Below are positions 25,836 through 61,577 of a stretch of 64,000 bases of DNA, one piece after another (position 1 is the stretch's first letter; every line of letters begins with the position of its first letter). The notes under the pieces were generated by a model, which was given only the letters and a program-made list of their open reading frames with translations, was not told the DNA's origin and made no database searches. The position numbers were made by a program, and so were the translations under genes. Source of the DNA: Zygnema circumcarinatum SAG 698-1b (Eukaryota > Plantae > Zygnematophyceae); NCBI GenBank assembly GCA_037447605.1, contig CM074804.1:5309909-5373908 (forward strand), read 5' to 3'.

Positions 25836-25854
25836 AAGCAAGCCAACCATTACA

Positions 25855-26265: not shown

Positions 26266-26299
26266 TTGTGTGGAGATTGCAAACCGAGAGGAAGAAGGG

Positions 26300-27521: not shown

Positions 27522-30500
27522 ATGGCGGGGCGCACGACGCTGCCGCTGATGCTGTGGCTGGGGATGGTACTGCTGGCGGCTGCGCTGGCGGGGGTGTGCG
27601 CAGCGCCCTTCAGCGCCACCGACAGCTTCACGCCGCCCTGCGCGCTGCTCGCAGACCAGAACACTGCACAGGTCCCCGACGGCACTGGTGGGTCTCTGCG
27701 CTGTGCTGGCTGGCTTGGGTGGGGAAATGGGGTTCTGCCCAGTTTTTTTTTTTTTTTTTCGGTTTTAAGAATTGATGGAGGGTGCGGAATGGGGCGATTT
27801 TGCGAGGCGTTCTCCATTCCACTGTTTTCTTACATGTATTTTAGATTTTTCAATTATCTCTAGATTTTTTTTATGAACCTCTTACTGTTTTTCTCCCTTT
27901 CCCTCCTCGCCCCCTCGCTTTCCTCGTTTCTCCTCCTCGCGCCTTCTCGCTCCCTCGACTCCCATCCACCCCCCTTCCCTCTCGCTCGCTCTCTTCTCCT
28001 TACTCTCCCCACTCATCCGCAAACTACGTTTTCCCTTCACTTTATCACTCCTCCTTTCCCGCTTCTCCCCCTCCACCCCGACATCATACGGCGTAACCCA
28101 ATCAAGCAATTAGATAAAATTGAACTGGTTTTTTTTTTTGAATTTAATTTCATTCTGACTTTTTTATTATTTTTTTTTTGTCCAACCCTCTCCCCCTCCC
28201 CTCCCCTTCCCGTTTCCTTCTGCTCTATCCTTTGCTCAAACCTCGGAGCTCCTGGCAGTGTTCCGGCGCTGGAGTGACCCCTCAGCGTGGCCTGGGGGAG
28301 TCGTCCCCGGAATTAACGGTGCGCGCGGAGCCAATGCGACCGTTTCGTGCGGCGTCGCGATAGAGCTCGACATTGCTGAGCTGGAACTCGGCCTGCTCAC
28401 CATTCAAGGCCTTCTGAGGCATGCGACTTCTCTGCCTGCCTTCTCTGCCTCTGCGTTCTGGAGTTCATCCCATTTTCAAGTACAATATATTCTCAAGCAA
28501 CTCTCACACCTTGAATTAGAGCATTACTGATTTGCTGGATCTTTTCGTGCAGGTTCAAGGACAGCTCCGCGCTGCCTGAGATCTACCTCAAGGCGGCGTT
28601 CATCCTGGTGCAGGGGCAGCTCGTGATCGGCACCCCCACGCAGCATTACAGTGGGAAGGCCACCATAGAACTCACTCCCAACAACGCGAACGGCCGCAGC
28701 TCCCTCTACTTCACCTCTCGCGCTCCTGCAGATGCCGCAAACCCAAGAAGTCTTGGGCACAAATCGTTCGCAGTGGTAGCCTACCTCTCTTTACCTTCGC
28801 TTCCATCCACATTTTCCTGCAGAGAAGCATCGTGCCTCCCTCCTGCAGAGGCAGTCCTTCCTTCCTTCGCCACACTAAGGAGGGGGAGAATGTCCTTCTG
28901 CTGCAGGTGGGAGGGCAGGTGCACCTCCATGGCATGCCCGGCGGCTCGACCACGCCTTCATGGTGCCGCCTTGTACGGACCGCCAACGCGGGCGACTCGA
29001 GCATCGCTGTGGACGCAGCGGGGGCTGCCAGCTGGCCTGTGGGCGGGCAGATTGTGGTCGCTTCAACCGACTACAGCAAGGACCAGGCGGAGACATTCAA
29101 CATTGTGGCAGGTGAGCTCTTTGTGGAGGATGACTGTTTGAGGTTGGCAATGCCGACACGAGATGCATCTCTGGACTCTAAACTTGGTCGAACGTGGGAT
29201 TGGACTGGTGCATTCAGTGACCAGAACCGCCAGCGGTGCTATTATAGCGTTGAGCGGCTCTTTCAAGTACATGCACTACGGCAACCCGAGGGGGCTCTTG
29301 GACGGCTTTGGAGGCTATTTGGAGCAGAGGGCGGAGGTGGCTCTGCTGACTCGCAACATTATGGTGACAGGCACGGATGAGCCTGCTCCGTACCAATATG
29401 AAGGTGCCTGCCCCCCTCTCACCAGCCGTTCTGCACCATTTTTGGACCATTTCGGCTCCCCGCCCATCTGATGATTTGGAGTTCAGAGATGTGCTTGGAG
29501 AGTTATTGAGTTCTGCTTGGATTGCAGGAGGCCACTTCATTGTATTCATGACTCAGAGACCGTTTCAATTCATTGAGGGAGTGGAGTTCTACAAGCTGGG
29601 CCAGCAGGGGAACCTCGGCCGCTATCCGATCCACTTCCACCTTGTCGGAAGCAATCCTGGAACTGTCTGCCGCAAAAATTCCATCCACCATAGTAAGCAG
29701 GTGAGCTGCAACGTTTACAATATATGGCGAGTGCTCCAAGTGCTTCCGTCAATGCAGAGGAATACATGCTGGTTCACCTTAATTTCTGGCTTCGTCGCAG
29801 ACGTTGGTATGTTTGTGTGGTGACTAACTAAATGGCGTTCCCGCACTTTGAATGCAGCGATGTCTTGTGGTCCATGCCTCCTTCGATATGACCATCGACA
29901 GCAACGTGGCGTACAACATTCCAGGCCACTGCTTCATTTTGGAGGTTAGCTAAGGAGGAAGGAAGAGGGAGGGGGAGGGGAGAGAGAAAGGTGAAAGGGA
30001 GGGAGAAAGCGCGGTAGAAGGGGGGGGGGAGGGGGAAGAGGAAGGGAGGCAGGAAGGTGAGGGAGGGTGGTGGACAGAGAGCTGGGGGGGAGGAGGGAGG
30101 GGGTGAGTGTGGGATGGGTGATAGAGGGTAAATGTGAGAGTATTGGACCTGACTGTGATGCTGCGCCTTTTGTGCTCGAAGCCATCACTTCTCACTCTCC
30201 CAGGATTTCTCACATGGATGATCAACTCATCTAAATCACCAATACTGGCACACGGGTAATTTGAAAAACATCATTTCATTGCCTTAGAACTCATTGGTTG
30301 CTGCTATTGTTGTGTCTTGCTGCTTCTTGCATGCGGCAGGAGGGCGGGGAGGTGGGCAACACCTTCGTCAATAACTTGGGCATGGTCATTCAGCCGGTGG
30401 ATAAGAAAATTTTGCTGCCAGGCAGCACCATATCTGATGAAACCGATGACAAGCCAGCCGTGTTTTGGAGTAAGTCACGAAACGCCAAACGACCTCAGCC

Positions 30501-33500
30501 TCAGTTTCAGCTTCCTGCAGTTTCAGCTTCCTTCTTAGCTACTGCTTTAATAAAGGCAGCGCCTTTGTTGCTCTATCTAATCGAGTTTCTTCCCGCCTTG
30601 TGCCTATGATGAGTAAAGTACTGCTACCACTCACACCGTGTTCTGTGCTCTCATTGCCGCAGTTTCAAACGTTCGCAATAACTTCCTGAACAATGTCGCA
30701 GCCGGCTCCTATGACTCCGGGTGAGCCAGTCGCTCGCTGCCTCTGTGTCCCTCCCGGCGGGTGCGACCCCGCGCATGCATGCATGCGCTGAGCCCCCCTC
30801 CTCCTCCCGTCCCCGGCCGTTGGCAGGTTTTGGATCGAGCTCCGCTACAAGGTCCGCGGCCTCTCCGCGCGCTTCGCCGCAGTGAACCGCACGAGCCCGA
30901 TCATGCAGAGCGTGCAGCGCTTCGAGAACAACGTGGCGCACTCCAACAGGTGCCGCCCCCTCCCTCCCTCCCTCCCTCCCTCCCTCCCCTCCCTCCGTGG
31001 TGTGGCGCGCCGCAGGGATGTGCTGCGAGGCATGGCATGGCATGGCATGGCGACAGTGTTTCTCACGGGGTGCAGCGTCACGTCACGTGCAGGATTGCGG
31101 GCGTCCGTACATATCCAAATGGAATTCTTCCACACCTTGCCTGGGTGAGTTCATCTTTGAATTTTGTTTTTTTGTTGCGAAAACTCCCCTAAACAAAAGG
31201 GAAGCAATTTCTAGTTAAAGTGCATCACAAGCAGCCTTTTCTCCTGCGTCGAGCGACATTTGAGCTTTCATTTGAGCCGTCCTGTTAACTAGTTCAAGGA
31301 CTAAATTGCGACGGAAAAGTTACGCTCTCAAACTCATCATTTTTAAGTGCCGCTTTTCCATGGCAGAGAGTACCGGGGCCGACAAACGGAACAATGAATG
31401 GGCTAAACATCTACAAAAACCCCTGGATGGGGTATGTGGTGATGACTTCCACCCAGAGCTCTTACATGTAACTCGTTGATGTTGAAGTCAGCCTGTTCAG
31501 TCGCTCTTGATGTCCTTCTCGGCTTGCAAAAGTTTGACTTTGCCTCATATGTTTTGCAGCATGTTTGCACACAACACGGAGCACCTGACCATCTCCAACG
31601 CGACCTTTGCCGACAACAACTGGGGGCTGTACATGCACCAAGACTTCGGTGTCAAACTCGTCAACTCGCGCATGGTCGGACTGAGCGAAAACTACGGCAG
31701 CCCGGACAGCTGCCAGAGCGGGAGCCGCTGGGCCAACTGCCGCCCCGTCTCCACATGCACGTGCGTCACTGCATTCTTACATTTCGTAATGCTTTCCTGG
31801 CTTGTCAAAAACCAGCATTGAGTTACTTTCTCACCTCGACCTTCAGCAAAGCTCAGTGACACAAGCATATTCGCAGGGTGCCCCTTGTGCTGGCCACTGA
31901 CTGCATGATTGCTCGCGCGTCCCTTTAGGACAATGTCTGCGGTTCTTCCACTCTGCCCTCACACGTGCGTGGCTGCCTCCCTGCAGGACGCCGCTGCCTT
32001 TGGGCGCTCAGGGCCGGTCCGCGGGCGGCAGCATCCGCACCTCCCCAATATACGGAGTGCTCCTCGATCCGTACTTCCTGGAATCGTTCGATAGCCTCAA
32101 TGTGCCCAACCAAATCATTTCAACAACGTAAGCAATCCAACGTCACTCGTGCCCTGCAGGAAGTGATGAAAATGTGTGCGACCGGGGGGTCGCTGGCCCG
32201 TACCTAGTTTGGAACTTTCCGGAATGGCCGACGGCATGAAACTGCGATGATATTAGTCCCCTGCTCCACGCGTATGTTGCTCCAGTATTCTAAGCATGGC
32301 CTTCCCCCCGTGGCTGCAGATTCCATAGTTTCAACTCCACTTGCTGGAATGCTGCAGCCATCACCACGTTCAATGAGGGCGATGAATGGATGGCATCCCA
32401 CCGCGTGCGGGTACGCTCTCCCGCTCAACCTCCTGTTGAAGCGCTCTCCTCTTCCTAAGGCCTCCGTGTTGCCGCTGCTGAACGAGATGATGCCATTATT
32501 GGTCATGTGCAGGCCCTCACATTTTCGCGGAGCACTAACCCTGTCTGGGTCGCACCAAAGATATCCTCTCCTTATGTGAGTCCTAAAGCACTAAACCAGC
32601 CTGTGAAAAGGAAAGTTGTTTTCCTGTGGACTGCAGCTGATGGAATCACAGGCACCCAGCATATTACCATATCCCCTTCTGCTCTCTCACACGTTGGCAC
32701 CTTTCTCTCCTTTCAGCCATGGGATCAAACTGAAGACGGAGGAGAGCAGGCGCAGTTCCACTCCTTTCAGGACTTGGACGGCAGCGTCATCGGCGCTCCT
32801 GGCTACGTGGTAGCCGACAACGTAAAAATTCTGCCTCCTAGCAAAAGGAACTGCACCTATTTCCCCAAGTGGAATGCGTACGGCTGCAAGGGTGCCTGCT
32901 ACCGCACTGTCCGCATCAGCTATGTCGAGCCGGGATTCGCTTCGGGCAGCAGGACCAATCCCAACGCTCCGGGAAGCTTTAGGTGAGCCGCTGTTGTGTA
33001 AGGGCTTCAAGTGCGCAGCAGGTAGAAGCGCAGCCTTGTGAAGGTACGACCTTGAAGGCCGTGGGCCATAAAAGTTGAACGCCTGCACTACCACAGCTCT
33101 GACAGCCCCTCGGGGGCTTTGCCCGGCAGCTCCTTGCAGGTGACTCGTGTGAGTGACGGGCAGACCATGCTACTTAATGGAAATCTCAACGTACTGGAAG
33201 GGGCGACCAGGGGCAACATCCGCTTCTTTTTCATGTCTCTGCTTGCGGGAATGACGTACCGGATCACCCCCATTCCCTCGTCAAAAGCACCTGCTTTCTT
33301 CCCTGGGAACATCTCACTGTCGTTGATCGACTATGAGGGATGTGGCCAGGCTCTCACTCTTCAGATTAAGCCTCAAGGGGGCAAAGCTTGGAAAGCAGCA
33401 GCCAACACCGACACAGTGTTTTTCAAGTACGCTTTCTGGACGCACGCTCCTCTGCCGTCATGCCCTCTATGCCCCGCTGAAGAGAAGGATGCACTGCAGA

Positions 33501-36500
33501 AAGAGGCAGCTTGTAGCATCCAGCTGAAGAAGGGTTTCCTGCCATGTGGCTACATCACGGATATCTGAAAGAAGGACGTAAAGCTATGCCCAGTGTATGC
33601 TACTTTAGAGAAGGAACGGAGTGCATGCCCAACACTGAATCAAAGCTCCTCGTCCTGCAGGCCATGTCCGGGAGCATCTCCACCACCAGCAGCTCTCTCG
33701 CAGGCTGTGTACAGTTACGCGTGCATCAGCAGCCAGGCGTGGATGGAGGTTGTTCTCGGGCCCGTCTTTTACGAAACCGTAAACATCGTCCAAGTCGCTG
33801 ACTCCATCGCGTGCAGCTCAACCAGGTGCCCTACTGCTGCAGCACCCGCCCTTCCCAGCATGCCCGCCTGAACCCCGCCAAGCCTGCCTGCCTGCCCTTG
33901 CCCGCTTGCTGCTGCTGCTGCTGGCCGTCGATCTGAATCTCGCCTCGGTGCGTTGTGGCGGCAGTGAGTGCGGCGCCCTCTGGAGCGGCAGCGCGGGGTG
34001 GCGGTACACCGCCACGTGGCAGGCCTACTTCTACGGCCCGCAGGCCCCGACCGGCGGCTGGTTGACCGGCGCCGCGCCGCTCGGCTGCAGGCCCTGTAAG
34101 GGACCCTCTGGGGGCATGCCGACCGTGGGGGAGGGGGCGCATGCGGAATTCAGTCTGTTGGGCTTCACCATAGACTGCAGGGATGTCTGAAATGCGTGTC
34201 TAGTTTGAGATGCGATTGAGAGTAAGGAAAACTGCTGCTTGTGCATGTATAGCAAGCGAATAAGTTTTTTGAACAGCTTCAAATTTCCCGTACAGCAACT
34301 GAATCTGTCTCTGCTTTTCTGTAAGCGCAGCCGTCGACCCGTTCATCAAAACGTACCTCCCTACGCCATCTGCGCAGCATATCACTAATTACTTCCGGAA
34401 GAGCTTCAGTCTTGTCAATACGGCCTGCTACACATCACTGCAGGTGGACCTCCTTGTCAAGGATGGCGTCGTGCTCTACCTCAACAACAAGGAGCTCATG
34501 CGGTGCGTCACCCTCCGACACCCTCCCCAGGCGCCACGACTGCTTACGCTTTCACATAGCTTCCACTGCTTGAAACGATATCTCGCACTGATCGACTCGG
34601 TGTTGTATTCTGTGTGCAGGACTAATATGCCCGCCGGCCCCATCACAAATGGCACCTTGGTAAGTGTCAAAGGGCGCCTGACTATGCTTCCGCTGCTTCT
34701 CACAAGTTCTTCTGTTACGTTTATAACGTTCCACTTACGAATTGAAGATAAGGGAATCGCGTACTTCTCATCTTCATTTGGTTGCCATATCATCTCTACT
34801 TCCCTTCCATGTGCAATCCACGAGCGCCAAAGCGTCCCCTGCCGCAATGCTGCTACGGCTCATCTCCCAACCCCGCTGCTTGGAGCTTCTCTCTGACCGC
34901 CCTCTGTCCCTTTGTGTGCAATGGCCGCTGCGTGCAGGCATCCTCGAAGACTGTATTCGGCGCATGGAGCACCTTCGTCCTCCCTCTCCCGGGCCTCGGC
35001 GGTGCGTACTCGCTGGTGGAGGGCGCGAACTACCTCGCGGCGGAGCAGCACGTGTTCGCGCAGTGGGCGTGGGAGACCGCCTTCGACCTGCGCATCTCGC
35101 TCACCCGCAAGTACGGCACAGCCCTCTCCGCTTTGCGATCACGACCCTTTCGAATGCGATGGGCTTTTGAACTGAATTTCTCTTTGGTTCATGCTGTCAT
35201 TGGAAGCGGCTACCGTGCTGACTACGTGCTTCCTTGCATTCGCTTTCTATTGCCGCAATGGGTGTAGTCTGAAAGTTCCTTTGTTGATCTGCAGGAGCTC
35301 CTGTCAGGGTGCACGCATCTCCCCTGAGGTGTGCGATGGCCTGGACAACGACAACAATGGTGAGTCCTTATAAGCTGCCCGAGGAGGGTGTGCTGCATAC
35401 TGCGTCCTCGGATCAGTTCAAGGTTTTAAAATTTCGGCTCAATCTATGGGCATGCTGCTCTGTTCTGTTGCTCTCTTTATAGCCAGTTGAACCTGGAGGT
35501 GCAGCAGACACTTGGAGAGTCCACTGTTGTGAATTCCTCTGTAGCTCAAAGGGCCCTCCGAATCACGGAAGAGTCTCGTCCATGCTCTAAAGGGATCCTA
35601 CGCGATGGGGCTGCAGGAAAAATCGACGAGGCGGCCAATGGACAGCCCCTCACCCAAACCTGCCAGTCATCGTGCGGCACTGGCATTCAAACATGTACCA
35701 ACGGCGTTTTCGCGAAATGTACGGCTCCTCCTATCAGCAAGGAAGTGTAAGTCCACAAAACACGCCATTGCTTCCTCTTAAGAACTACAACGTACAACTC
35801 TCTGTCTATGTGTACTCTCTCTCTCTGTGCAAGTGGCTCAGCGGTAGCAAATGTCCCCTTAACAGGTGAGGCCCCGTTGACGTCTTTGACTGAGGTTCTA
35901 CTCTATGCCCTCCACTTTCCTTGCTTTAGGAACACGTTACAGCAAGCAATCATGCAGGAGTTGAGACATGTTCCCCCCCCCTGCCTGACCTTGCGGCGCA
36001 GGTGCAACGCCATAGACGACGACTGCGACGGCCTGGTCGACAACGGCGCGGCCTCCCTCGACTGCCCCGCGGGCCGCGTCTGCTTCCGCGGAGAGTGCCT
36101 CCCCGCGGGCAGCCCCGCCCGGCCCCTGCAGGTGTGGCCCAAGAACGCGACGGGGTGGGCGTACTATGACAAGGGGGGGAATCTGGACGCCGTCAATCCC
36201 TCGTGGAGGAGCGGGTGAGTGTACGGCTCTGCCTTGTGACGGCACAGGGATGGGGGGCGTATAGAAGAGCATCTTGCTGTCATCCTTTCGTAAAACAAGA
36301 ACTTGGGGAGTCTGAATGAAGAGGGTTAAGTGGTTGCTATTGCTAGCTCATATTTCGGATGGTCTGGTTTGGCTCTGGCAGGGCTAACATTAACTCCTGG
36401 GAGACGGGAGCCGGGCCCCTTGGATTCAACGATGACAACCCTAGTTGGGACCGATATGGCACAGTCATCGAACATTTCGGCAACGACGGTGTATCTTTAA

Positions 36501-37841
36501 CAGCCTATTTTGCCAAGTCATTCACCCTCGAGCAGTCTGAGGTAGCCCAGATCTACAGCCTTGGTGAGTTACACTACTTCCTGCAATGAACTAGTATTCT
36601 GAATTGAACGTTACATGGACAATCTATTGCTCATCTCCGTCAAGTTGACTGCCACTCCCAGCCTAATTTCCAATTTTCAAGTTGATACAATATGCTCCTA
36701 CAATACCATCAAGAGGCTCTGTGTTGCCTTACAGACTTCAATCTGCGGCGGGTCGACGGCGCCGTGGTGTATTTAAACGGCGTAGAGGTGTGGCGCAGCG
36801 CCATGCCGTGGGGTCCTATCACGTGGACCACAAAGGCCGCCGCGAGTGCGGGCACCCTGCAGGGCGCTTACCACTCGTGCGACGCGTGCTTCCACAACAC
36901 TACCCGAGCGCTGCAGGTGCGGCCGCCAACCACTGTGCAGCCGAGAGTTGTACAAATAACTGCTGCGTGTTCTGCTACGCTTACATGCGTGAGCGAGGCT
37001 GTGTGCGAGGCAATTTGGGACAGCCCTTAGGGGAGACAGCGACTGCCCGCGTTGTTTTGCATCACTGAAGCTTGAGGCCTGTTGCTTGTGCCAAGCAACG
37101 ATTGCCGGCTGCCCGAGTGCTTTCCTTCTCTTTTTCTTTTTTTTTTGCTTTTTTTTTTTTCAATCGTTTTGGAATGCAGCGAAGTTTGCAGAATGCTACA
37201 AAATGCGAATCGCTTGAAATACACTGAAGAAAACATGTTTTGTCGTGTGATGAATGGTGCAGGCTGGCACCAACTGGATTACAGCCGAGCTTCACATGGC
37301 ATGGCGGTATGAAAACCACGCGGCATTCGACATGGACCTCTGGAAAAACGTGGTGGTGCCTTGTACGAGTCTCCCCGGAAATCCCAGCGAATGTGTGCGC
37401 CAAGTGGAGCAGCAGCCTATCCCTGTAAGGCTCGAACCCTGAATCCCTCATAAGAGCTTTATCTTTTTTGGACGACGTTTCCTGCGTCCACTGCAGAGTT
37501 CAATCCATCTTCATGGATGGTCCTCAGCGAGTCTTATGAGAAGCAGCCTGGGTTTGCTGCAGCAAAACTGCACAGTCAGCAACTCCTAGTGCGAGAAAGA
37601 CTATTAGTGAACTTGCACATGGAAGTGAGTGTAATAAGTAGTGAAGTAATTTGGAGCGTTCAGTGTTAGCATCATGATAGAGTTTCCGTTGTTCAGCAGT
37701 GCGACCTTACAGCCTGACGAAGATTCAAAATGTTTCCTTTGCTGCAGGCAACTTCGAACTGGATATATTCCGATGCTAGTTTGCCATTTCCACCAGCCAA
37801 CTGGATGCTCCAGGCCTACACAGCACCCCAGTGGAAATCAG
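27522..37841 (+). CDS. G8-domain secreted protein, paralog A (signal peptide - G8 - CEMIP/TMEM2-like beta-helix - jelly-roll x3 with CDGxDND motifs), about 30 exons visible, last exons lost in the gap
   Basis: Signal peptide MAGRTTLPLMLWLGMVLLAAALAGVCA; G8 RRWSDPSAWPGGVVP...GQLVIGT...LGHKSFAVV|GGQVHLHG; GGQIVVASTDY...QAETF; RAEVALLTRNI; GVEFYKLGQQGNLGRYPIHFH; NSIHHSKQRCLVVH...NVAYNIPGHCFILEEGGEVGNTFVNNLG; FQDLDGSVIGAPG. The repeats downstream are described in the findings. Confidence 0.85.
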
Positions 37842-38030
37842 GTGACGAAGGGAACGCCTTTCTGCCTTACACGAGTTAGTTGAATGCACACTGATGAACG
37901 GATAAAGACACAGAACACTGATGCCAATTGTTACCATTAGAGAAGTAGCTTGTCTTCACTATTTCACCTGGATTACCTCTCGTTAAGGATTACGGAAAGG
38001 TCTGCACATGGGAGGATTTACCTGAAGTAT

Positions 38031-38130
38031 NNNNNNNNNNNNNNNNNNNNNNNNNNNNNNNNNNNNNNNNNNNNNNNNNNNNNNNNNNNNNNNNNNNNNN
38101 NNNNNNNNNNNNNNNNNNNNNNNNNNNNNN
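38031..38130. other. Assembly gap (100 N, true size unknown)
   Basis: Run of exactly 100 N. Confidence 1.
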
Positions 38131-51084: not shown

Positions 51085-54000
51085 TTAGAGGGGCGCAGGT
51101 AAGCAGGTGAGGGCTTCCCTGCTCCCCGTCATCTGAAAGTCAAAAAACGCATTCGCGATGGAAGACTGCGCGCGGTGCAGTTCCACCGCCACCACATTGG
51201 CGCCGGGCTTCAACCACCCGCCGGTCAGGGGCACAGCTCTGTAGGACCAGTCTCCGCCAAACCACGCAAATGTGTCCGCTGTGATTGGGTCCGACATGCT
51301 CATCCGAAAGGCCTCGACCCCATTGATGTACAAAACCTGCCGACAGCAACGTTACAAGGTCATTTTCTGCATCATGAAAATGGTTCGAAACAGAGGAAAG
51401 GCAATGTTTCGCTCTAACTCGTGGCTGCAGTCGCCTGAAGGCACCTGGTCTACTGTTAAAACAGGCAGGTTTGCCGACTCTACACATCAGTCGGCCTATA
51501 GTAGAACAAGACTGGCAGAAAAGTCTGCATGCAGTTAGGAGGGAAATCTGCATGGACATACATGGACAAGAGTGTTGGTCAGTAAAGTCAAAGGCAGTGA
51601 CATACCGCTCCATCATTGGCTAGCAACCGGCCAGCCAGGGAGAAGTAACATCGCGCATCGGGAACGTCCAATGTTTTGCGGAAGTAGAGGGTGCGCTGCG
51701 GGTCGCTCGTGTTCTGACCGCGGTTCAGATACTTTCGGATCAGCCATTGTGGCCCCACGCCGAGAGGGGCCATGCCTGCAGAAAATTTCACGGATCTCTC
51801 GATAAGCGGAAGCTAACGTGCAGTCTCCAAAACATTTAAGGAAAGACCTCCGATCGCATTGGTTTGCTAATCAGAAGAGTGTTCATGAACAGCTCATTAA
51901 GATGGCAGCTGGAACTAAGACAAGGCCATTGCAGAAATAACCAGCAAGGGGCTGACCTGTAGGCCAGGACGAGGCATTAAAGCTTGGCATCATCCAGTTG
52001 GCAGCCGGCAGGGGGAGGGTAGCGTCCGAATATTGCCAGATGGAGTTTGCCTGCACAGTTGCTTATATGAAACTTCAGCCTAACGTGGCTCAAAGGCAGC
52101 CTTTCAACAGAAGCAACAGGTAGAAATCTAGCAGACATTTAACTGAAAAAAGGACAACAATACGGAGACCACAGCCCTTGACCAGTTTCAATCGCCTCCA
52201 CACTCTGCGCGATGAAAGCTCAAAAGCGAACTGTGGGGTCTCTAGAAACATCTAGAATACATGAAGTCTCTCGGCTTACTCCCAGACGCATCACATTTCA
52301 CTGGAAAGCCCACCAGCCTTATCTGCAGTGAGGCTCACCACGAGGAGCGGCTGAGTGGTCTGCCGTACACACTCTCCTGCGGCGCACGGCTGTTTGACCA
52401 TTCGGAAAAGGTCCATGTCAAAGGCCGCCTGCTTCTCATATATCCAGGCAAGATGGACCTCTGCGGCTATCCAGTTGACCCCCGCCTGCCAGCAGCCCCC
52501 CAAACAATCAAGCAGTGAATTCCCGACCCCAAGTCTGCAAATGAATCCAATTGACCGGAAAAAGCCTCAAAGTTACCCACTAGAAGCAGAATGTCTACTC
52601 TACATCGGACTCTACTCTTTCTTGCCTCTGTCTGCATTCTTTATTAAAAACGCCAAGGACAAAAGTGATAATGTCAGTATGAAGATGGCTACCTTGAGAG
52701 GCGAAGAGGTATTGCGGAAGCACGCGGTGCAGCGGTTGTAGGTCCACTGCAGGTTGCAGCAGTCCGAGCCGGGCGAGCTGGCGGCATCCTGCGTGGGGAT
52801 GGCAGCCGTTGTGGTGTGGGCGAGGGGGCCCCAAGGGAGGTTTTGGCGCTCCAACTCCACGCCGTTCAGATAGACAACGGCACCGTCTACCCTTCGAATG
52901 CTGAAGTCTGAAGAAGCAACAGGGATAAGTGATGAGTTAAGATTCATTTGCTCATGCGCATGTGCAGCTCCACTGCATTCAGGAAGATACGCACGGCTGA
53001 TAGCCGTCTGACGCTGAAGTTCGTGGAAAGAGGATGACAAGTAGAGCAATGTAAGATTATAAAAGAATGTGATGCGCAGGTGCAGCAACAGGTTTACAGC
53101 CGAAGAAAAGCGAGTTGCATGCACTTTAAGGCTCGTCATGCTTCGGTTGACAGTCGTACCTAAGCTGTATGTGTCGTTCAGTTCTGTCTGTGTCAGGTTG
53201 AAAGATTTGAGGAAATAAGCAGTCGCCGACTTTCCACCAGCTCCAAAGTTATTTATAGTGGTCTTTGCCCAGTCCCATGCAGGAACGTAGTAGTTGAAAC
53301 CAAGTGGAGCCTGCCCGACGCTCCACTGTTTTGCACTAGTCCTGCACACCAAGCAGCGAAAACCGCAAATTAGTTCGTGGGTTTCTACCCGAAACACTTG
53401 ATCGACGTAGGCCCTTCGTTACGAAGCGTTTCCAGACCTTGTCAGAAAGCGAAGACTGCCGACAGATGAGTTCCCTTACCCCATCCTCCATGTGGGGTCG
53501 ATCGCATTCAGGTCATTGCCGCTGTCATTGTACGCCCAGTTGGAGGCGTTCCGTGGCCACACCTGCGTGGACGCCGTGGCATTCTGTACGGGCAGGCACC
53601 TCCCTGCATAGCACGCCTGCTCCGCGGGGCAGTCGAGCTGCGCGGCCCCGTTGTCGACCAGCCCGTCGCAGTTGTCGTCTATCAGGTTGCACCTGCAAAC
53701 CGGAACCGCCGTACAGTTAGAGTACAGCGATGCAGACAAGCTCAAGGCTTCAACTGTTCCGGAGAGACCGAAGGTGCTGCAACTTCAAAAGTCGGCTGCT
53801 GGTAAGAAGCACGGGCCTGCCTTGAGGGCTCACCTTTCAGCGGTTGGCATGCGCATGCTGCAAACGAACTGCCCCCCGACACATGTGGCGGTGCCGTTGC
53901 CGCAGGGGGTGCTGCAAGGCCGAGTCAGGGGTCTGCCATTGAGGCCCTCGTCCACTTTGCCTGCCCATTCACAGGACAATAGAGGAGGTCAGAAAAAGCG

Positions 54001-57000
54001 ATTCAAGAAAGGTTGCTAACATTTTCTGCAGGACTCAGGATACTGCTCTGTTCACATATCCATGACCTGCAAGAGCAAAAACTGAAAGAGATTTGGAGCG
54101 GAATCAACGAAAAACTGAATCTGGCGAAAACAGGCAAAACGAACCAAACCTGGTTTGCCCACTACACAATAATCTAACTGGATTTCTTACCACAAGGCTT
54201 AGCCAAGAAACTGTTCCAAAGGTTGTGAAACTCACCATTGAAGTTGTTGTCAAGTCCATCACACACTTCGGGTGAAATCAGGGCGCCAGAGCATGAACTC
54301 CTGTACATCAAAAAAAAAAAAAAAAATCGTGTACCCTCTTTCAGCTTCTTTCTGGTATGCTGGTTCTCCAAAAGGGTCTGATGCTAGTTAAGCGAGAATT
54401 GAGGCTCTGGTGGCCGCTCGAGGGGCAAAATAACGCAAATGGAATGGAGTAGTCTGAGGTCATATTCCAGTAAATTATAGCAAGAATTTCTAATACGCGC
54501 TGATTGTTCAGGCTACAGAGTTAGATGAAAGAATGCCGTTCGAATCAAGGTTATCTGTATAATATACCTGCGAATAGCAGAAACCCTCATATCCATCGCC
54601 AGCTGATAAGCCCACGTCACATTTACGTGTTGCTGCACCGAGATCGAATTAGTTCCTTCTACCAGGTTGTATAGATTTCCAGGGCCTGGCAGAGGGAAAG
54701 TGAAAGTCTGCCACGTAAATGCCGGTGTGAACACCGTCGCCTGCAACGAGAGAACCATAGCAAAATTAGTCATCTAGAGCTGACAGAAAGTGAGGAGACG
54801 TGCTTCGTTAAGATACATTTTTCTGGGATGTGGGGCGATGAGAGAAACGGTTGTGAGAGCAGAGTACTAATGCTGAAGTTTCTGCCAATGTTGCAGCAGC
54901 CGTACTGCATGATTTCCACGACAGGCTTGCAATGCAGGATGCGTTATGTATCAGAGTTTGCACTGCAAGCGAGAGAAAACCCACAAGCGTGGAGTTGGTG
55001 ATCGGGCCTGCAGGCATATTGGAGCGCCCGCCGGGCAGCTCTTGACCGTTGAGATAGAGAACAATGCCATCTTGTACAATGACGTCGATCCGCAAAGCCG
55101 TGTAGCACTTTGAGGACTTGATTCCGAAGCTGCGCCGATAGTAGTACGCCACGCGGCTTGCACTCGGCCTCTGAACAGTCGTGACGATGTAATCGCTTCC
55201 CCCTGCACATTCATGCCACCGCTTGCGAGTGCCGCCTTTAGAGCTGCGAGCAAACCCTAATGTACTCAACAGGGTTAACGGGGGTCATTCTGGACTGATG
55301 CACTCAACTGACATTAATGCAAATGCAGCGCAGGAGCAGCATAGCCCTACTACTACTACTACTCACAGGACGTGTAGCCCAGCGGTGCCGCTCCCGTCTG
55401 CCACTGCGAGGCGGAGGCGTCCCCGAGCAGGAGAGGCGCGCGGAGGAGCGCCGCCCCGCTGTCGAGCCCGCTGTCGTCGTATAGCCAGCCGGAGGGGCCG
55501 CCGCCATAGCCAGACCCGCTCCACAGCACCGCGCACGCAGCTCTGCAACCACAAATAGCGGGGGGAGGGAGGGTCAGGTTCCATGCGCGCAGCTCCACGG
55601 CCTGTCGAACTGCCGCCGCACAGGACCGTGGGAGCTGCAATAGGCGTACGGATGGACCGGCCGATCTGTGCCGTATTCGCGGGCGGTGCCGATTGGATGG
55701 ACCGAATCGGCACCGCCACGTGGCGGGGCCTCTGCGGCTCCGGGCGGGCGGGGGATGCTACGCGACAAACGGGGGGGAGGGGGGCAGGGCGGGCGGGGCT
55801 CACGGTGGCGTGGGGCAGAGCGAGGAAGGCGCGGGGAGGAGGGCGAGGTCGCCTGCGGAGGGGGCCATGGCGACCTCCAGCCATGGCGCGGCCTGGCCGA
55901 GGCAAAGAGGGCCGTACGTGGTGCTCGTGCTGGCCGGCGGGGACACGCCCGAGTCGGGGCATTGCCTGAGAATGGTGCACAAGCGGGCGGGTTAGAAAAC
56001 GCGAACACAAACATGGAATGGCAAGATACTACTTACTAGCAGCAATAACAGGTCTATGAATTGCTCGAAGAGAAAATAAAATGTGTAGGTTTTCTACCCT
56101 TGTCTTTTTTAATTCATTGACCTTTGCAAGACGTTGAAGCCTAGAGAGAGCGCCAATAGCTACCAAATGGCCAGCAGGCAAGCAAGAGGCCGAGCCTTAC
56201 TTGAGGAACACGGTGTCAGAGTCGGCCAGAGTCCAGGGGACGCCGGCCGCGGGGGGGAAGCGCAGGGTGAGGCCCTGCCCGCATCCGCCGCCGTCCTTGT
56301 AGCGCACTGTCAAGCTGGAGGGAGAGAACCCTGTCTGGTTTCTCCCAGGAACGAAGGTGATGCTGTACGTCTGGCCAGCAAGTAGCGTCATGTGGAAGAA
56401 GCGTTGCGAGGTATCCACTTGGGCGTACACGAAGAACTGGTTCAAATTGCCAAACAAAGAAAGGGATTGTCTGTCGCTGCTGCGCGTCACTACAATTGAG
56501 CTGCACAACCGCGCAAGGAAAGGGATTGTTAGGATGCTTAAATCCCTGGACCATCTGCATCCGTTGCATCATTTAAGAATCTGTTTTTATTGGATCGTCA
56601 TCTCCGGCGCATTAATATGTTTCCATTGACTATCTGATAACTTTCTGTCAAGATCCAATACGTGCCTGAAATCGCCAGGAGTATTATTTGCTGCAGCCCA
56701 GCCAGCTTCAAATCCTGGCTCAAGATAGCTGATCTGGATGGTGCGATAGCAAGTCCCAATGCAGCCGTAGGCATTCCACTTCGCGTTGTACGTGCAGTTT
56801 CTTCGGTTTGGCGGCAAAATCTTCGTGTTGTTCGTCACAACATAGCCAGGAGCTCCGATGATGCTTCCATCGGTGTCCCACAGAGTGTAAAACTGCGACT
56901 GCTCGCCTCCATCCTGAATGTCGTTCCAGGGCTGAAGAAGGCCACGACATGAGAGACTCGTCAGATGCCTAAGACGCGATATCTTTAGCTGGTTTATGTG

Positions 57001-60000
57001 TGCCTTGACGTGCCTTATAGAGACATGACTAATTTGAACATATTTTCGTGTTAACTGCAGTGTCACGAATAATGAACACTTACATTGTACATGGCAAATC
57101 TTGGTGCACTAAATATTCTGTTTGTGTTGGGAGCGAACTTGAGTTTCTGTCGACATGGCAAGACAGGCGACATGTTGAAGTTAGTAACCGATGATAAACA
57201 AGCTTGCAGATTTTCGTTCAACCCCTGTGCAGGTCCACAGCAGCAAATAGTGGACTGGGCTTCCCTCGTGGCCTTTCATTCTAAACTGCCGCCTGTCCCA
57301 AAGAAAAGCAAGTTGCGGAAAAGGCTCAGTTCCAGCAAATGACTGGGGCCAGTGTAATACCTGGATGCTTTGGCTGGGATTCCAAAGATCTCCCAGGCCG
57401 ACCATAGCTATGGCAGCCGCATTGTTGCAGGTTGGCGTATAGTTGGCAAAGCTGCAAGGAACATGTGCAATAAACTCCTTCAGATTGCCAAACCTTCAAC
57501 CACAAAATAACTTTTGGAAACCTTGTGAGATCAGCCAATGAAATGTAGCATTTCCTCGGTATCCAATCAAAGTGCGGGCCCCACCTGGTAGAGACAATCT
57601 GCACGGGCCTGGCCCCCGAGTCGCTTCGGTTGCCCTGATCTATGAGCACCCCGAAGGTGGACGCCGTCCGAACAGCATTTCCCACTGACCGCGCGAGGCG
57701 AGTTGACGCCACAGGCATGCTGCGCAGAGGCGATCAGAAGAGGGCATTGCGGTCAGCGTAAGGAGCATCGGCGTCTTAGTAAAGTCAGACAGACATTGAC
57801 GGAGTCGTTTTGGTTCTCGTCCATGCCATGCAACACTCGTTTGAACGTGGTTTCGGATGAGAATACGTACGTGCAACCAACAATGGGCTTGCAGTTAGTC
57901 CATATGTCGGTGCGGAAGCACTGCGAAGGGTTCCCGAAGTTGTTCGTGAGACCCACCAGACGCGAGTTCTGAAGTATGGTGCTTTCATCCTGATTGAGCA
58001 TGATCCCCCAAGTGTTGTCTGCGAAAGTAGCCGAGTCGATGACGAGCTGATCGGTGTTGTGAGAAAACACTCTGCACCACCCCCCCCGCAAGTATCCGTT
58101 TAGCGATCAATGTTCAAAAGCTACCACGCGACATTCTCCAAAAAATCGATTGCATGGTTTTGGGGCTGCAGAGTCGTGACATACCCAGACCACGAGTTTT
58201 TGTACACGATGAGGCCCGATATGATGCCAGTCGCCACAGACTGCCAGGACATGCCACAAAGAGGTCAGGATGACGGTCCACTAAGAGCGCCCAACATTCA
58301 AACTTCACCACCTCCAAAGCACATTACGGGGTCAATGGAATGCTAGTAACGAGTGCAGCTCCGGTAGACGAGTCAGGACTTACGCCGTCGGCGTTGCGCG
58401 GGCGTGATCCATGCGGGTACGTCCTCAGGCCAAACGCTGAAAAAAAAAAAAAGTTTCCATGACGGCCAAACCCAACAGCAATGCTTTAGAGATATGTCCG
58501 CCGAATGAGCTTTTTGAAGAGCTTGATTGAACGCACCCCACCATTCTTGTAAGCTGGGAGATTGGAGAGGACTGCAGGACTCACCTTTATTGCTATGCGC
58601 CACATTCCCCGAATGCTCACCCCAACGCGTGTGGAAGGGCACAGTAGTATTCACTCCGGGAATGTTGAGGGACATCCCGCGGACTCGTGCTCGCAGCTCA
58701 ATCCAGAACCTGCCCAAAAGAAGAGCACCAATGTTGAGCTCTATATTCGGCTCATACAAACGTGCAGTCATGCTGCGAGTACGTAGAAGCGATGGGAGAG
58801 ACAGTCCACTCCAAATCACTTAAGCGAATTGCAAAAAAAGCTGCTTACCCCGAGTGCTCCGACCCTGTAGCTCTGTTCCTGATGAAGTCGTTTGAAGAAT
58901 TTACAATCCAAAAGGTGGATGGTTCGTTGTCGGTCTCGTCGGAGGTTGTAGGGTTTGCACTTGACGGAATTCTCTTCGTGACTGCGTTGCGGATAGCCGC
59001 CATTCAGACAGAAAGCAGCTGACGTCAGGCACCATGAGGCTCTCATGGCCAGTCAGCAGCATGACCCTCAAGAGGTTTTCTGTATATCTTCTGAGAGCAC
59101 GATTGAAAGAATCCTTCGGAAATCGGCAGGGTCATGCAAGCCAACTCTCCTGCCACTTTTTGCAATAAATTATTCGTAAGGCTCACCTGCGTTTGTGACA
59201 ATGCCGATGTTTTCAATGAAGGTGTTGTTAACCTCGCTTCCCTCCTGCAATGAAGAAGATTGGGAAGCAAAAAACCTCAGTTGAGGCGATATATTGCAAC
59301 CCGGTGGTGATTGGTGAGACACAGAGCATTGGTGAAGCATTCTTTACCTCCAACATGAAGCAATGGCCTTGGGTTTTGTACGCCACGTTGTTGGAAACAG
59401 TGATGTTGTGGGAAGCGTGGACGACGATGCACCTCTGCAGAAACGCACTCAGACTTAGACTCAGGGGTGCAACGTAAATTTGACAATTCATTGATTCTCG
59501 CATCTCCCACATGTAGCTCTAAAGCATTCGATCTCTCTCACCTGTTTGGATTCCAGAATAGTATTTTTGTGGCACACGGTTTCAGGAACGCATCCCACTG
59601 CATGGAAGTGGAGGCTGTACCGCCCCAAGTTGCCCTGCTGCCCCATCTTCCAGAACTGCACACCTTCGATGAACTGGGGACGGTTTGTCATATATATAAT
59701 GAAATGGCCTCCTGCATTACGTTCACAAACCCCGCCAAAAAAGTCAGCGAGCAGTAATTTCTCCACTTTTTTTTTCCTTTCCTCCCTCCCAGCCTCCCAT
59801 GAATGCTGCAGTCCGATCCAGGCCTTCCTTGAGGCGGCCTCAAAGTGCTCCTCCTCCTCCTGCATGCATGCGCATGCACGGAGGAGGAGCAGGATGAGGC
59901 AGCCCCCACCTTCCAGGTCGTAGGGCGCGGCCTCGTCCGTGCCCGTGACGACGATGTTGCGCGAGAGCAGGGCAACCTCCGCGCGCTCGTCCACGAAGCC

Positions 60001-61577
60001 CCCGAAGCCGTCCGAGAGGCCGTCGAGCTGCCCCCAGTGCATGAACCGCAGCGGCTGGTCGAGGGAGAGGATGGCGCCCGAGGAGGTCGAGTTCACTGCT
60101 TCACATCACCGCACATGGTTCCCCGAAACGATTAAGTTTTAATGAAAGAAAAATTCGTCCACCCCACAATGCACATTCATCTCTCTTCGATTCATCAGAT
60201 CGAGCGTTTGAAGTCATTTCCTACAAGTACAAGTGAATGTACAATGAATGAATGGATGAATGTGAGTGCAATGTGAATGTGCAATGTGCAATGTGCAATG
60301 TGAATGTGAGTGCAAGTGTGAATGTACCCGCAGTGATGGTGAACTCTTCCGCCTGATTTCTGTCGTAATCTGTTGACGTCACCACGATCCGCGAGCCCAC
60401 TGGCCAGCTTCCGGCCACGTTGGCAGTTACGAAGATCGTGGTATCGTTCGGCAGAGCAGTTCGGTTGAGCTGGCACCACGTCGGCGTGTTGGACCCCCCC
60501 GGCAGCCCGTGCAGGTGCAGCTGCCCGCCCACCTGCATTCCACAACGTCTCTTGAATTGCATAAATAAAATAGGATTTAAGTAAGTAAACGGGGAGGCGG
60601 TTTCTCAACACAGCCTTTTTTTTTGTTTTTAAAACGTTCATGAGCTTGGAATACTTTCTCAGCCTTACCACGGCGAAGGCCTTGTGCCCGAGGTTACGCG
60701 GATAGAGCGGTTCCGCGGGTGCGAAGCTGGTGAAGAGGAGGGGCGCGCGGTTGTTAGGGTTCGGCGTGAGCTCGAAGGTGAGCTTCTGCGAGAACTGCCG
60801 AGCGGGCGTGCCCGCAGAGAGCTGCCCCTCCACCAGGATGGAGTTCGCCTTCACGTAGATGCTCGGCAGCGAGGGGTGGTCCAGCACCCTGCGCAGCACC
60901 GCACATGCAAAGCGCGCTCAGTCGTGGCACAACATGTGGCGAATGTTTTGCATTGACCAGACCCTAAAGAGGACGCGTGGACTGCATGGCCCGGCCCGGC
61001 CTTACTGGAGGAGGCCCTTGATCTGCAGGCGGCCGAGCTGCACGGCCGGCACGTCGAGGAGAATGGCGACGCCGGGCGGCACGAGCGCGTCGGCACCGAC
61101 GGCCGACCCGACCCCCGGAACAGCGCCGGACGGCCACGTGGAGGCGTTGCTCCACCGCTGGAAGTCTGCGGAGGTCATTCAGTCGGTCAGTCAGGCGGAG
61201 GTGGTCAGCTCAAAGGCGCCATGGCGACATTGGCTGGACGAGCGGGCCTCTTGGTGCCACGTACTGCCACTACTACTGCAGGTCTGCAGGTCTGTCTGGC
61301 AGGCAGGTGTGCCCGAGAGGACAGTTTCGGTGCCAGCTGAGCTGGGATAATCTTAATGCAGAACAGCAAGGAACACATGGAGGGAGGTGCAGTCTGGCTG
61401 GCTGGCTGGCTGACCTTGAGGCTGCGCATCTGTGAGTGCTGCGTACGGGGACACGAAGACGTCTGTCGGCGCTGCGGGCGCGGCCTGCACCCTGCGGCCC
61501 GCGCAGAGAAGCGCAAATAGGAGGAGGTGCGCTAGGAAGCCGGCCCTCCCTCCAGTGCGGACCGCCGCCATGGCCAT
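51085..61577 (-). CDS. G8-domain secreted protein, paralog B, apparently complete, about 30 exons
   Basis: Signal peptide MAMAAVRTGGRAGFLAHLLLFALLCAGRRVQA; FQRWSNASTWPSGAVP; VEGQLSAGT...LGHKAFAVV|GGQLHLHG; GSRIVVTSTDYDRNQAEEF; ERAEVALLSRNI; GVQFWKMGQQGNLGRYSLHFH; RCIVVHASHNITVSNNVAYKTQGHCFMLE; WDTDGSIIGAPG; YYYRRSF...QDGIVLYLNG; EVCDGLDNNFNG; CNLIDDNCDGLVDN; last exon YINGVEAFRM...GANVVAVELHR...FDFQMTG...CLPAPL* ending at 51085. Confidence 0.87.

Follow-up and report, generated by a model that had tools for sequence, protein, structure and literature searches.

Does a plant-lineage genome encode relatives of the animal proteins CEMIP, TMEM2 and fibrocystin, and what might such proteins do in an alga? 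Through CEMIP, TMEM2, PKHD1 and PKHD1L1 the G8/beta-helix module has medical importance, and its mechanism is unsettled. We analysed a 64,000-nucleotide window of Zygnema circumcarinatum SAG 698-1b (contig CM074804.1, positions 5,309,909 to 5,373,908 of the forward strand), in which a first-pass annotation made from the letters alone had proposed three paralogous genes for large secreted proteins of this kind.

Three tandem paralogous genes

A, B and C are nuclear genes, tandemly arranged paralogs of one another (Table 1), in a streptophyte alga that tree position places among the zygnematophytes; C and B lie tail-to-tail. Collinear chains of tblastx matches link the A region to two others in the window, 61169..51955 (minus strand, gene B) and 39411..46996 (plus strand, gene C). 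The similarity between B and C extends further than the matches of A, to 51103 in B and 47821 in C. Gene models were built by protein-to-genome spliced alignment, which can mask frameshifts as introns, using the homolog P0005 as first template and B as second.

The models contain about 31 exons per gene, and the ATG codons of A and B lie at 27522 and 61577, respectively. The models of A and B are uninterrupted, with introns of 55-577 nt (103-288 nt in B) and GT..AG ends. B shares intron position and phase with A at 24 of 29 sites and with C at 18 of 20. The collinear genes with common exon order and intron phases that were originally proposed are recovered by the tblastx chains and the spliced models. 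The paralogs are 46-53% identical to one another, in line with the strong divergence from which the first-pass annotation conjectured an old subfunctionalisation; in the domain X region, tblastx aligns A and B at 64% identity over 90 aa. We regard gene identity and architecture as near certain.

Table 1. Features of the three-gene cluster (positions within the window)
Feature	Position	Strand	Basis or remark
Gene A	27522..37843	+	spliced model: 31 exons in window, 1471 aa; 3' end in assembly gap
A exon 1	27522..27681	+	start codon and signal-peptide-like N-terminus
A beta-helix including G8	28318..32546	+	G8 ~28285-28940; CEMIP_beta-hel ~29400-31103; Pfam and mapping from P0005
A domain X, with DGS..G motif	32732..33374	+	aligned to TMEM2 up to chain residue 912
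A jelly roll 1	34062-35109	+	mapped from P0005
A two Cys/Asp cassettes	35299-36165	+	mapped from P0005
A jelly roll 2	36401-37356	+	mapped from P0005
A jelly roll 3, first exon only	37748-37843	+	mapped from P0005; most of module in gap
Assembly gap (100 N)	38031..38130		RNA loose ends after 37843, before 38131 and before 38659
Gene C	38660..47839	+	spliced model: 25 exons in window, 1091 aa, from mid beta-helix to stop codon
C frame switch, inside jelly roll 2	46121..46166	+	three-frame translation
Gene B	51085..61577	-	spliced model: complete, 31 exons, 1633 aa, ATG to stop
B beta-helix including G8	57113..61106	-	G8 ~60499-61139; CEMIP_beta-hel ~58428-59913; Pfam on exons and mapping
B domain X	56253-56916	-	mapped from P0005
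B jelly roll 1	54569-55400	-	mapped from P0005
B Cys/Asp cassettes	53529-54293	-	mapped from P0005
B jelly roll 2	52392-53322	-	mapped from P0005
B jelly roll 3	51114-51960	-	mapped from P0005

Transcription and the assembly gap

RNA contigs match 12 of the 13 modelled junctions between the 3' part of A and the 5' part of C in the window. The RNA joints of A have GT..AG ends and lie at 35110|35295, 35358|35616, 35746|36002, 36213|36381, 36562|36734, 36911|37258 and 37424|37748. These joints reach a word depth of 390-490 in RNA runs X2-X4, indicating that A is strongly expressed. The coding sequence of A before the exon at 35617 measures 3448 nt in the model and 3475 nt in a 4615-nt RNA contig, an agreement within 27 nt. 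Between 56000 and 61600, the exon fraction of B is 0.47 and the RNA runs contain 0.42-0.47 of sampled words; since this share equals the exon fraction, B is transcribed. A and B are intact and transcribed, and each encodes a soluble, secreted protein some 1,600 residues long.

The two flanks of the assembly gap belong to different genes and are discontinuous in the RNA contigs. Contigs from four runs extend past the donor at 37843 by 174-255 nt of sequence that the window does not contain. This extension encodes QGPLGFGPNL, the start of an exon homologous to B 51775-51606. Another contig joins a 28-nt exon end, which is likewise missing from the window, to the acceptor at 38659/38660, and from 38131 RNA contigs continue into the gap for 231 nt or more. 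Concealed there are the last (3') exons of A, the intergenic spacer and the first ten or so exons of C. Judged from A and B, the true length of the gap is probably several kb rather than 100 bp.

Domain architecture of A and B

On inspection, A and B both begin with what looks like a signal peptide, as the first-pass annotation had read it. In A, a hydrophobic window at residues 4-16 (Kyte-Doolittle 2.36) is followed by small residues. A hydrophobicity scan found no membrane-spanning stretch beyond the N-terminal signal, save one doubtful linker stretch in the B model. No hydrophobic stretch occurs at the C-termini of B and C, which agrees with the earlier claim that these lack a transmembrane helix.

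The signal peptide is followed by a TMEM2-homology module, a variable linker and three jelly rolls of galactose-binding-like type; two Cys/Asp-rich cassettes separate jelly rolls 1 and 2. The TMEM2-homology module consists of a single long right-handed parallel beta-helix, whose initial rungs are the G8 domain, and a beta-sandwich termed domain X (bioRxiv 10.64898/2026.10.19.758525), which comes next.

The HMMER check that had been proposed detected both expected Pfam families in A and B. CEMIP_beta-hel (PF24606, cut-off 27.3 bits) matches single exons of A (53.7 bits) and B (39.4 and 43.3 bits, profile positions 4-61 and 63-91); in C, this stretch falls within the assembly gap. G8 (PF10162, cut-off 22.9 bits) matches consecutive pieces of A (14.4 and 16.1 bits) and consecutive exons of B (14.4 bits, profile 1-41, and 19.7 bits, profile 47-86), each below the cut-off singly and above it as a rough sum. 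G8 scores are 49.5-61.9 bits in four full-length homologs with 44-50% identity to A and B (P0005, P0009, P0008 and P0017), and CEMIP_beta-hel likewise matches the full-length homologs. A and B are thus members of the G8 and CEMIP beta-helix families.

PF11617 (a MopE-type putative metal-binding Cys/Asp motif, cut-off 27 bits) scores 30.0 bits on P0005 and stays below the cut-off on the window pieces of A (13.7 bits) and B (13.2 bits). CDG.D.DCDG-like strings are visible in A, B and C. The jelly rolls of the homologs matched no Pfam family above cut-off, and PF13385 and PF14683 matched weakly.

All motifs that the first-pass annotation had quoted as hallmarks of the G8/beta-helix region occur in A and B. 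In a 39-sequence family alignment of algae, bacteria and fish, both proteins keep 12 of 12 invariant columns. The nearly invariant columns are kept at 39/39 in A and 38/39 in B.

Predicted structure

Structures were predicted for P0005, the full-length homolog nearest to A and B, which is about 50% identical and stands in for the window's own proteins. The AlphaFold model of P0005 residues 30-900 has a pLDDT of 87.5 and a pTM of 0.90. Its top Foldseek match is the TMEM2 ectodomain (PDB 8C6I, 8c6i_A; E 1.9e-34, TM 0.68), the comparison that the first-pass annotation had proposed. By sequence, 8C6I is also the sole match among solved structures (E 5e-38 over about 560 residues). P0005 therefore carries the TMEM2-homology module: its fold matches 8C6I, and the sequence alignment reaches the D.DGS region.

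The Foldseek matches after 8C6I are all beta-helix polysaccharide lyases, hydrolases or depolymerases. The best of these are capsule lyases, phage depolymerases and GH87 alpha-1,3-glucanases. For the C-terminal model of P0005 (pLDDT 78.8), the matches are sugar-binding jelly rolls from GH2 and GH35 enzymes and from rhamnosidases (probability 1.0), within a multi-domain alignment of high rmsd.

Comparison with characterised families

The description of these proteins as CEMIP/TMEM2/fibrocystin-like holds for the module of G8, beta-helix and domain X and fails for the remainder of the chain. Like TMEM2 (CEMIP2) and CEMIP (HYBID, KIAA1199), the algal proteins have a G8 domain fused into one long parallel beta-helix, then domain X, and they share the motifs GRYP.HFH, NVAY..GHCF.LE.G.E.N and D.DGS. 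They lack the two lectin-like GG/ILEI domains (PF15711) by which TMEM2/CEMIP are defined, the first interrupting the helix and the second lying at the C-terminus; fish TMEM2 carries a PF15711 record, but the algal proteins have none. A stretch of 208 residues in the 8C6I chain corresponds to 60 in P0005; some 150 residues of TMEM2 have no counterpart between the G8 part and the helix. No CEMIP_X Pfam match was found on the algal proteins. They have a short signal-like hydrophobic N-terminus instead of the type II membrane anchor of TMEM2, and additionally contain three jelly rolls and Cys/Asp cassettes. Because the GG domains and the type II anchor are absent, we reject assignment to CEMIP/TMEM2 proper.

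The TMEM2-homology regions of fibrocystin (PKHD1) and PKHD1L1 have an equal three-part module. The algal proteins contain one such module, compared with two in fibrocystin and PKHD1L1, and lack the IPT/TIG chain, PA14, the SEA domain and the membrane anchor. PF01833 (IPT/TIG) had no match on the algal homologs and B and C end without a hydrophobic stretch, so the fibrocystin/PKHD1 family was also rejected.

The overall fold resembles that of right-handed beta-helix enzymes, including capsule lyases, phage tailspike depolymerases, GH110, GH87, GH28 and the AlgE4 epimerase (Foldseek E 1e-3 to 7e-11), and in both a helix precedes binding modules. These enzymes and the algal model show 7-12% identity, low TM scores (0.1-0.26) and no demonstrable common catalytic residues.

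Whether TMEM2 itself is an enzyme is disputed. The crystal-structure study detected no hyaluronidase activity in the purified ectodomain and could assign no active site (PMC10206443), and a cell-based study calls human TMEM2 non-catalytic (PMC10276149). Intrinsic TMEM2 activity was reported by another group (PMC10474455). The reported mutations that abolish TMEM2/CEMIP activity map to the lectin-like domain, which the algal proteins lack. Given the dispute over TMEM2, the polysaccharide-cutting role considered in the first-pass annotation is not transferable from it.

Distribution

We identified orthologs in Chlorokybus (Chrsp112S01614), Klebsormidium nitens (KFL_000270270), Spirogloea muscicola (SM000269S09915 and two sister copies) and Closterium spp. 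(e.g. CAI5972480.1), as well as among EukProt transcriptome proteins (P0005, P0017, P0071 and P0029). These streptophyte-algal orthologs are 34-50% identical to A and B and form a single clade with 100% SH-aLRT support. They bear out the proposal of an expanded algal family. All have the same module as A and B, and those of Spirogloea, Closterium NIES-65 and P0005 also share the C-terminal jelly rolls and cassette. The Klebsormidium and Chlorokybus proteins are shorter (1038-1168 aa), and local alignment to the C-terminal part of P0005 was partial (P0074 about 910-1133, P0045 about 1417-1599). The algal orthologs are machine predictions only, named 'unnamed', 'hypothetical' or 'G8 domain-containing'.

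Protein homology searches found no land-plant protein, consistent with the absence from land plants noted at the outset. Our literature search found no paper on G8 proteins in plants or algae. The homology search returned 2118 matches at E<=1e-8, mostly bacterial or metagenomic. Bacterial G8 domain-containing proteins (about 800-900 residues; Acidobacteriota, Pseudomonadota, Planctomycetota and many metagenomic) combine G8 with the CEMIP beta-helix without GG domains, as the algal proteins do, and are closer to the algal module than the animal proteins are (30-34% identity, E about 1e-60 to 1e-67). They differ from the algal proteins in having other tails and no introns. We know of none that has been characterised.

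Possible functions

It is somewhat more probable than not that the secreted proteins A and B act extracellularly on a polysaccharide. The polymer would be held by the jelly rolls, and the groove of the beta-helix, which is predicted to bear family-invariant His, Arg, Glu and Asn on successive rungs, would bind and probably cleave or remodel it. As substrate, one of the alga's own anionic polymers, from wall or mucilage, would be most likely; hyaluronan is not, to our knowledge, a streptophyte polymer. Secreted carbohydrate-active enzymes typically have a catalytic module with binding modules behind it.

A possible but less probable reading is that the proteins are non-catalytic, with the beta-helix and jelly rolls binding glycans, cross-linking mucilage or wall, organising matrix, or mediating cell-cell or cell-substrate adhesion. 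Roles of this kind have been suggested for the ectodomains of fibrocystin and PKHD1L1, and some authors hold the same of TMEM2. The negative TMEM2 results (PMC10206443 and PMC10276149), the unclear enzymatic activity of the fibrocystin TMEM2-homology regions, the three binding-type jelly rolls and the very high expression of A, as expected of a structural matrix protein, are consistent with this reading. Polar His, Arg, Glu and Asn are nevertheless strictly conserved among bacteria, fish and algae, exceeding usual scaffold needs; the fold neighbours after TMEM2 are all enzymes, and the reported intrinsic TMEM2 activity (PMC10474455) also argues for catalysis.

Should the proteins be enzymes, they might instead attack foreign polymers in the surroundings of the alga, such as exopolysaccharide from the capsules or biofilms of bacteria or glucans from the walls of fungi or oomycetes, for defence or nutrient scavenging. 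We consider this unlikely. Branching within streptophyte algae tracks species order, suggesting a long-kept housekeeping role, whereas clustered expansion and fast divergence are typical of genes facing other organisms. The nearest non-algal relatives are very numerous bacterial proteins, and the best fold neighbours after TMEM2 would suit such targets, but beta-helix fold similarity tells little about substrate. It is very improbable that the locus is not a working system at all, consisting of pseudogenes, contaminant DNA or assembly or modelling artefacts. The gap removes parts of A and C, the aligner can pass frameshifts off as introns, and C has apparent frame breaks (see below). For A and B, the intact models with GT..AG introns, the RNA-matched junctions, the agreement in exon total with the RNA contig and the retention of all invariant family residues largely refute this reading. 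Spliceosomal introns and spliced RNA rule out bacterial contamination.

Rather doubtful, in our estimation, is a broader proposal: that the family is the plant-lineage version of an ancient GG-less G8/beta-helix glycanase whose core cuts an anionic wall or mucilage polymer, kept from Chlorokybus to zygnematophytes and lost as land plants arose. If true, these simpler, abundant, soluble proteins would define a new carbohydrate-active enzyme family and offer a clean system for locating the active site of the disputed TMEM2/CEMIP module. Here the module lacks lectin-like domains and is joined to binding-type jelly rolls; the proteins that carry it are secreted, highly expressed and come from the closest algal relatives of land plants. 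The proteins are candidates for unexplained wall or mucilage remodelling in zygnematophytes, provide a simpler soluble protein for testing core-module activity, and belong to a gene family that appears to have been lost when land plants originated. The novelty is in recognition and architecture, neither a new fold nor a new principle, and predicted orthologs are already in public databases.

Copy C

Among the three copies, only C shows apparent frame breaks; transcripts absent or frameshifted in every copy had been named in the first-pass annotation as grounds against the proposal. The frame switch in jelly roll 2 could be modelled solely as an implausible 46-nt GC..AG 'intron', and RNA-verified introns in the region are all 102-455 nt. 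The second apparent break is upstream, where a concealed exon splices at 38660 out of the conserved frame. RNA joints of C occur at 38705|38949, 39007|39409, 39913|40296 and 40384|40840, with a loose end from 39610 to 39782. Their depth of 3-57 indicates weak expression, and C also has unspliced contigs and an antisense spliced transcript. With two apparent frame breaks and weak expression, C may be decaying rather than functional.

Three paralogous genes in an intron-rich locus

The region is eukaryotic and intron-rich, and the window's ORF list holds only fragments of 20–90 codons, as the first-pass annotation had warned. A tblastx comparison of the A region (27000–38030) with the whole window yielded two further collinear chains: chain B on the minus strand, from 61169 to 51955, and chain C on the plus strand, from 39411 to 46996. 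B and C match each other for two exon groups beyond the chains found with A, to 51103 (B) and 47821 (C), and one further matching C exon lies upstream at 38641–38712. These two chains besides A, together with the B–C continuation, identify three paralogs; C and B lie tail-to-tail, in agreement with the reading from the sequence alone.

We built spliced models with a purpose-written protein-to-genome aligner, in which codon matches are scored, introns may fall in any of the three phases but must have GT/GC..AG ends, and stops are penalised. The templates were P0005 (a EukProt transcriptome protein and the closest full-length homolog) and then B, after which the models were extended to start and stop codons. 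Positions 27522 and 61577, proposed as the limits of the cluster, coincide exactly with the start codons of A and B. Introns agree in position and phase at 24 of 29 sites between B and A and at 18 of 20 between B and C. Protein identities of 52.6% (A–B), 46.2% (A–C) and 46.9% (B–C) bear out the strong divergence claimed for the paralogs.

Spliced models of the three G8/beta-helix genes
Gene	Position	Strand	Exons	Predicted protein
A	27522-37843	+	31	1471 aa, stop not reached
B	61577-51085	-	31	1633 aa, ATG to stop
C	38660-47839	+	25	1091 aa, mid-helix to stop

The exon models are least certain across the poorly conserved linker between domain X (the beta-sandwich domain that follows the beta-helix) and jelly roll 1, at 33661–34095 in A, where it includes a 55-nt intron, and at 55800–56010 in B, where it is Pro/Ala/Ser-rich and GC-rich. 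Rfam gave no match over the window. Just upstream of A, a 94-bp unit forms two tandem arrays of ~2.8 copies each (24774–25040 and 26777–27051) that are reverse complements of each other; between them lie a long GA-rich microsatellite and a GGGAG repeat (25279–25836, 26297–26465). The arrays could be inverted subterminal repeats of a mobile element.

A and B are transcribed and spliced

In seven RNA runs labelled with the organism, 0.42–0.47 of the sampled words of 56000–61600 were present, and the exons of the B model make up 0.47 of this interval. The agreement is consistent with spliced B transcripts in which no introns are retained. For A, RNA reads were mapped over 35000–40900, spanning the 100-N assembly gap between A and C (38031–38130). 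Word depth for A in this interval was 390–490 in three RNA runs. Six of seven GT..AG RNA joints in A agree with the model within the stated cut ambiguity; the seventh lay one codon off, and the model was adjusted to the RNA. A 4615-nt RNA contig contains 3475 nt upstream of exon 35617, where the A model has 3448 nt of coding sequence. An artefact or a pseudogene is excluded for A and B; for C, either is a possible reading.

The assembly gap hides parts of A and C

Contigs in four RNA runs extend 174–255 nt past the A donor at 37843. The first 30 nt of this extension translate in frame as QGPLGFGPNL, which matches the start of the next B exon, and this 30-mer is absent from the window even with three mismatches allowed. 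On the opposite side, contigs leave 38131 and extend into the gap for 231 nt or more, and one contig enters the acceptor at 38659/38660 from 28 nt absent from the window. The RNA thus leaves both flanks into sequence that the window does not hold, which rejects continuity of the flanks and implies that the gap joins non-contiguous sequence. The gap hides the last exons of A, the intergenic spacer and the first ~ten exons of C; judged from A (27522–31093) and B, the hidden sequence probably amounts to several kb. It would contain some two final exons of A, completing jelly roll 3 and ending in a stop, and, for C, a signal peptide, G8 and the front half of the helix.

We rejected the possibility that A and C are a single gene cut by the gap, since both hold the stretch from mid beta-helix to jelly roll 2, at 46% identity. 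A modelled C exon at 38238–38265 was spurious, as RNA puts the true upstream exon outside the window sequence.

Copy C is transcribed and may be decaying

Five modelled junctions of C are spliced in RNA, with a depth of 3–57 and several unspliced contigs. The last 28 nt of the hidden exon upstream include, in one frame, the family motif L..F.GN.A and are homologous in DNA to the corresponding exon ends of A and B. This exon ends 12–14 nt earlier than these counterparts and enters 38659/38660 out of frame with the conserved VRTYPHG downstream. In jelly roll 2, two conserved segments, NMPWGP..WTT and C.SCFRNT, do not share a reading frame, and the only link between them is a 46-nt GC..AG ‘intron’ (46121–46166), whereas RNA-verified introns hereabouts are all 102–455 nt. 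The frame mismatch and this improbable link argue against an intact C frame. C also has an extra canonical intron of 117 nt (GTGAGA...CAG, 45962–46078) in an exon that is undivided in A (36735–36916) and B (52907–52693).

C may be a transcribed, decaying copy. Alternatively, its frame breaks may be indel errors in the assembly and contigs: at 38497, one contig lacks a single nucleotide relative to the assembly, which points to small indel differences or errors near the gap and bears on the reality of the breaks. The initial observation of a three-gene cluster is confirmed with two corrections, namely that gene parts are hidden in the gap and that C is possibly broken. Within C, a further RNA joint at 39647–39750, detected in two runs, has CT..AC ends; these are the ends of a minus-strand GT..AG intron and indicate a spliced antisense transcript.

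Domain architecture

On the window exons, the Pfam profile CEMIP_beta-hel scores above cut-off (A, 53.7 bits; B, 39.4 and 43.3 bits), and G8 is matched piece by piece in successive exons, with each piece below its threshold and the sum above it, in agreement with the G8/beta-helix assignment previously made from motifs. Neither of two protein collections contains the window's own proteins; the closest entry matched a B exon at 61%. An exhaustive HMMER search with one 90-residue exon returned 68 relatives, several of them long proteins. P0005 (1628 aa), P0009 from Spirogloea and P0008 from Closterium contain G8, CEMIP_beta-hel and a PF11617 Cys/Asp motif; P0017 (a transcriptome protein of 1138 aa) contains G8 and CEMIP_beta-hel only. 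All four are 44–50% identical to A and B over nearly the whole length.

Whole-protein structure and family scans were performed on such homologs of A and B, for example P0005. The only sequence match among all solved structures is the TMEM2 ectodomain (8C6I, E 5e-38), in an alignment that begins in the latter half of G8, spans the helix and extends into the D.DGS region. A confident AlphaFold model of P0005:30–900, based on a 39-sequence alignment, has a pLDDT of 87.5 and a pTM of 0.90. Its top Foldseek match is 8C6I (E 1.9e-34, TM 0.68), as expected from the proposed relationship to TMEM2, followed by beta-helix capsule lyases, phage depolymerases and GH110, GH87 and GH28 enzymes. The alignment, which covers algae, bacteria and fish, has 12 invariant and 39 nearly invariant columns, in which several His, Arg, Glu and Asn residues recur at intervals of one helix rung. 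In A, the invariant residues include H314, H347, R370, H375, E402, N405 and N410. A keeps all of the conserved columns and B all but one.

In the model of the back half of P0005 (residues 880–1628, pLDDT 78.8), three beta-sandwich domains match galactose-binding-like jelly rolls of GH2, GH35 and rhamnosidases, and two small Cys/Asp cassettes separate the first of them from the second. All three jelly rolls are visible only in tblastx cross-hits, the family alignment and the model; self-blastp of B and P0005 at E 1e-3 found no internal repeats. An Atlas feature search with the C-terminal half gave scores of at most 0.77, which are leads at most. Apart from one doubtful linker stretch in the B model, the sole hydrophobic stretch found is the signal-like N-terminus, in keeping with the lack of a transmembrane helix noted for the C-termini of B and C.

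Relationship to TMEM2 and predicted function

The algal proteins share with TMEM2 and fibrocystin the TMEM2-homology region, composed of G8, a parallel beta-helix and domain X (fibrocystin modelling preprint, bioRxiv 10.64898/2026.10.19.758525). TMEM2 lectin-like domain 1 (~150 residues) has no counterpart in the algal alignment to 8C6I. In the TMEM2 structure, G8 is part of the helix and no active site is assignable, and the three substitutions said to abolish activity sit in lectin-like domain 1 (PMC10206443), the domain missing from the algal proteins. Our literature search found no published assignment of catalytic residues for CEMIP/TMEM2. TMEM2 activity is itself disputed (against: PMC10206443 and PMC10276149; for: PMC10474455). 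True orthology to CEMIP/TMEM2 or fibrocystin was rejected, as the GG, TIG and anchor features are absent. The homology claim is supported for the TMEM2-homology module, though not for the CEMIP/TMEM2 family proper. Given the GG-less architecture and the disputed activity of TMEM2, the algal proteins are members of the G8/CEMIP-beta-helix superfamily only, and a cutting function is not simply transferable to them.

With a putative signal peptide, strictly conserved polar residues on a beta-helix and three predicted binding-type modules, the proteins have, by analogy, the layout of a secreted carbohydrate-active enzyme. Because of this layout, we favour a reading in which A and B would act extracellularly, binding an anionic wall or mucilage polymer of the alga itself and probably cleaving or remodelling it. 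The controversy over TMEM2 activity leaves room for the main rival, in which the proteins would only bind or adhere. They may instead act against polymers of microbes.

Distribution and history

The named relatives come from Spirogloea muscicola (three copies), several Closterium strains, Klebsormidium nitens and Chlorokybus. They are followed by very many bacterial and metagenomic proteins (800–900 aa, 30–34% identity), then by diatom proteins and only then by fish TMEM2 (28–30% identity). Algal relatives stand at the top, and neither search (proteins of 571–2849 aa; among the best 8000 candidates) listed a land-plant protein. A vertically inherited land-plant ortholog would be expected beside the top-ranked algae. 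Predicted streptophyte orthologs are present in public databases, and we found no publication treating G8 proteins of streptophytes. Neither keyword searches pairing G8 with streptophytes or algae nor searches by Pfam and InterPro accession returned anything relevant; the 48 papers found to name the ‘G8 domain’ concern animal proteins, except one chytrid genome paper.

In a quick maximum-likelihood tree of the module only (50 rows, 499 columns, unrooted), the streptophyte sequences all fall into a single clade (SH-aLRT 100%), within which Chlorokybus branches first, then Klebsormidium and then the zygnematophytes. This clade and its species-like branching order fit ancient vertical inheritance among streptophyte algae and a later loss in land plants. 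Deeper nodes, which join the clade to bacteria or animals, have weak support and short branches; in such an unrooted tree, a transfer from bacteria may or may not lie at the origin of the clade. A, B and four transcriptome proteins form a clade with 97% support, next to Closterium; A and B are not paired within it, which indicates that their duplication is old. An Epithemia diatom protein and four metagenomic proteins (P0106–P0109 and P0080) nest inside the streptophyte G8 clade, a placement that could reflect transfer between algae or a long-branch artefact. CBM_4_9 (PF02018) is on record for four of these five proteins.
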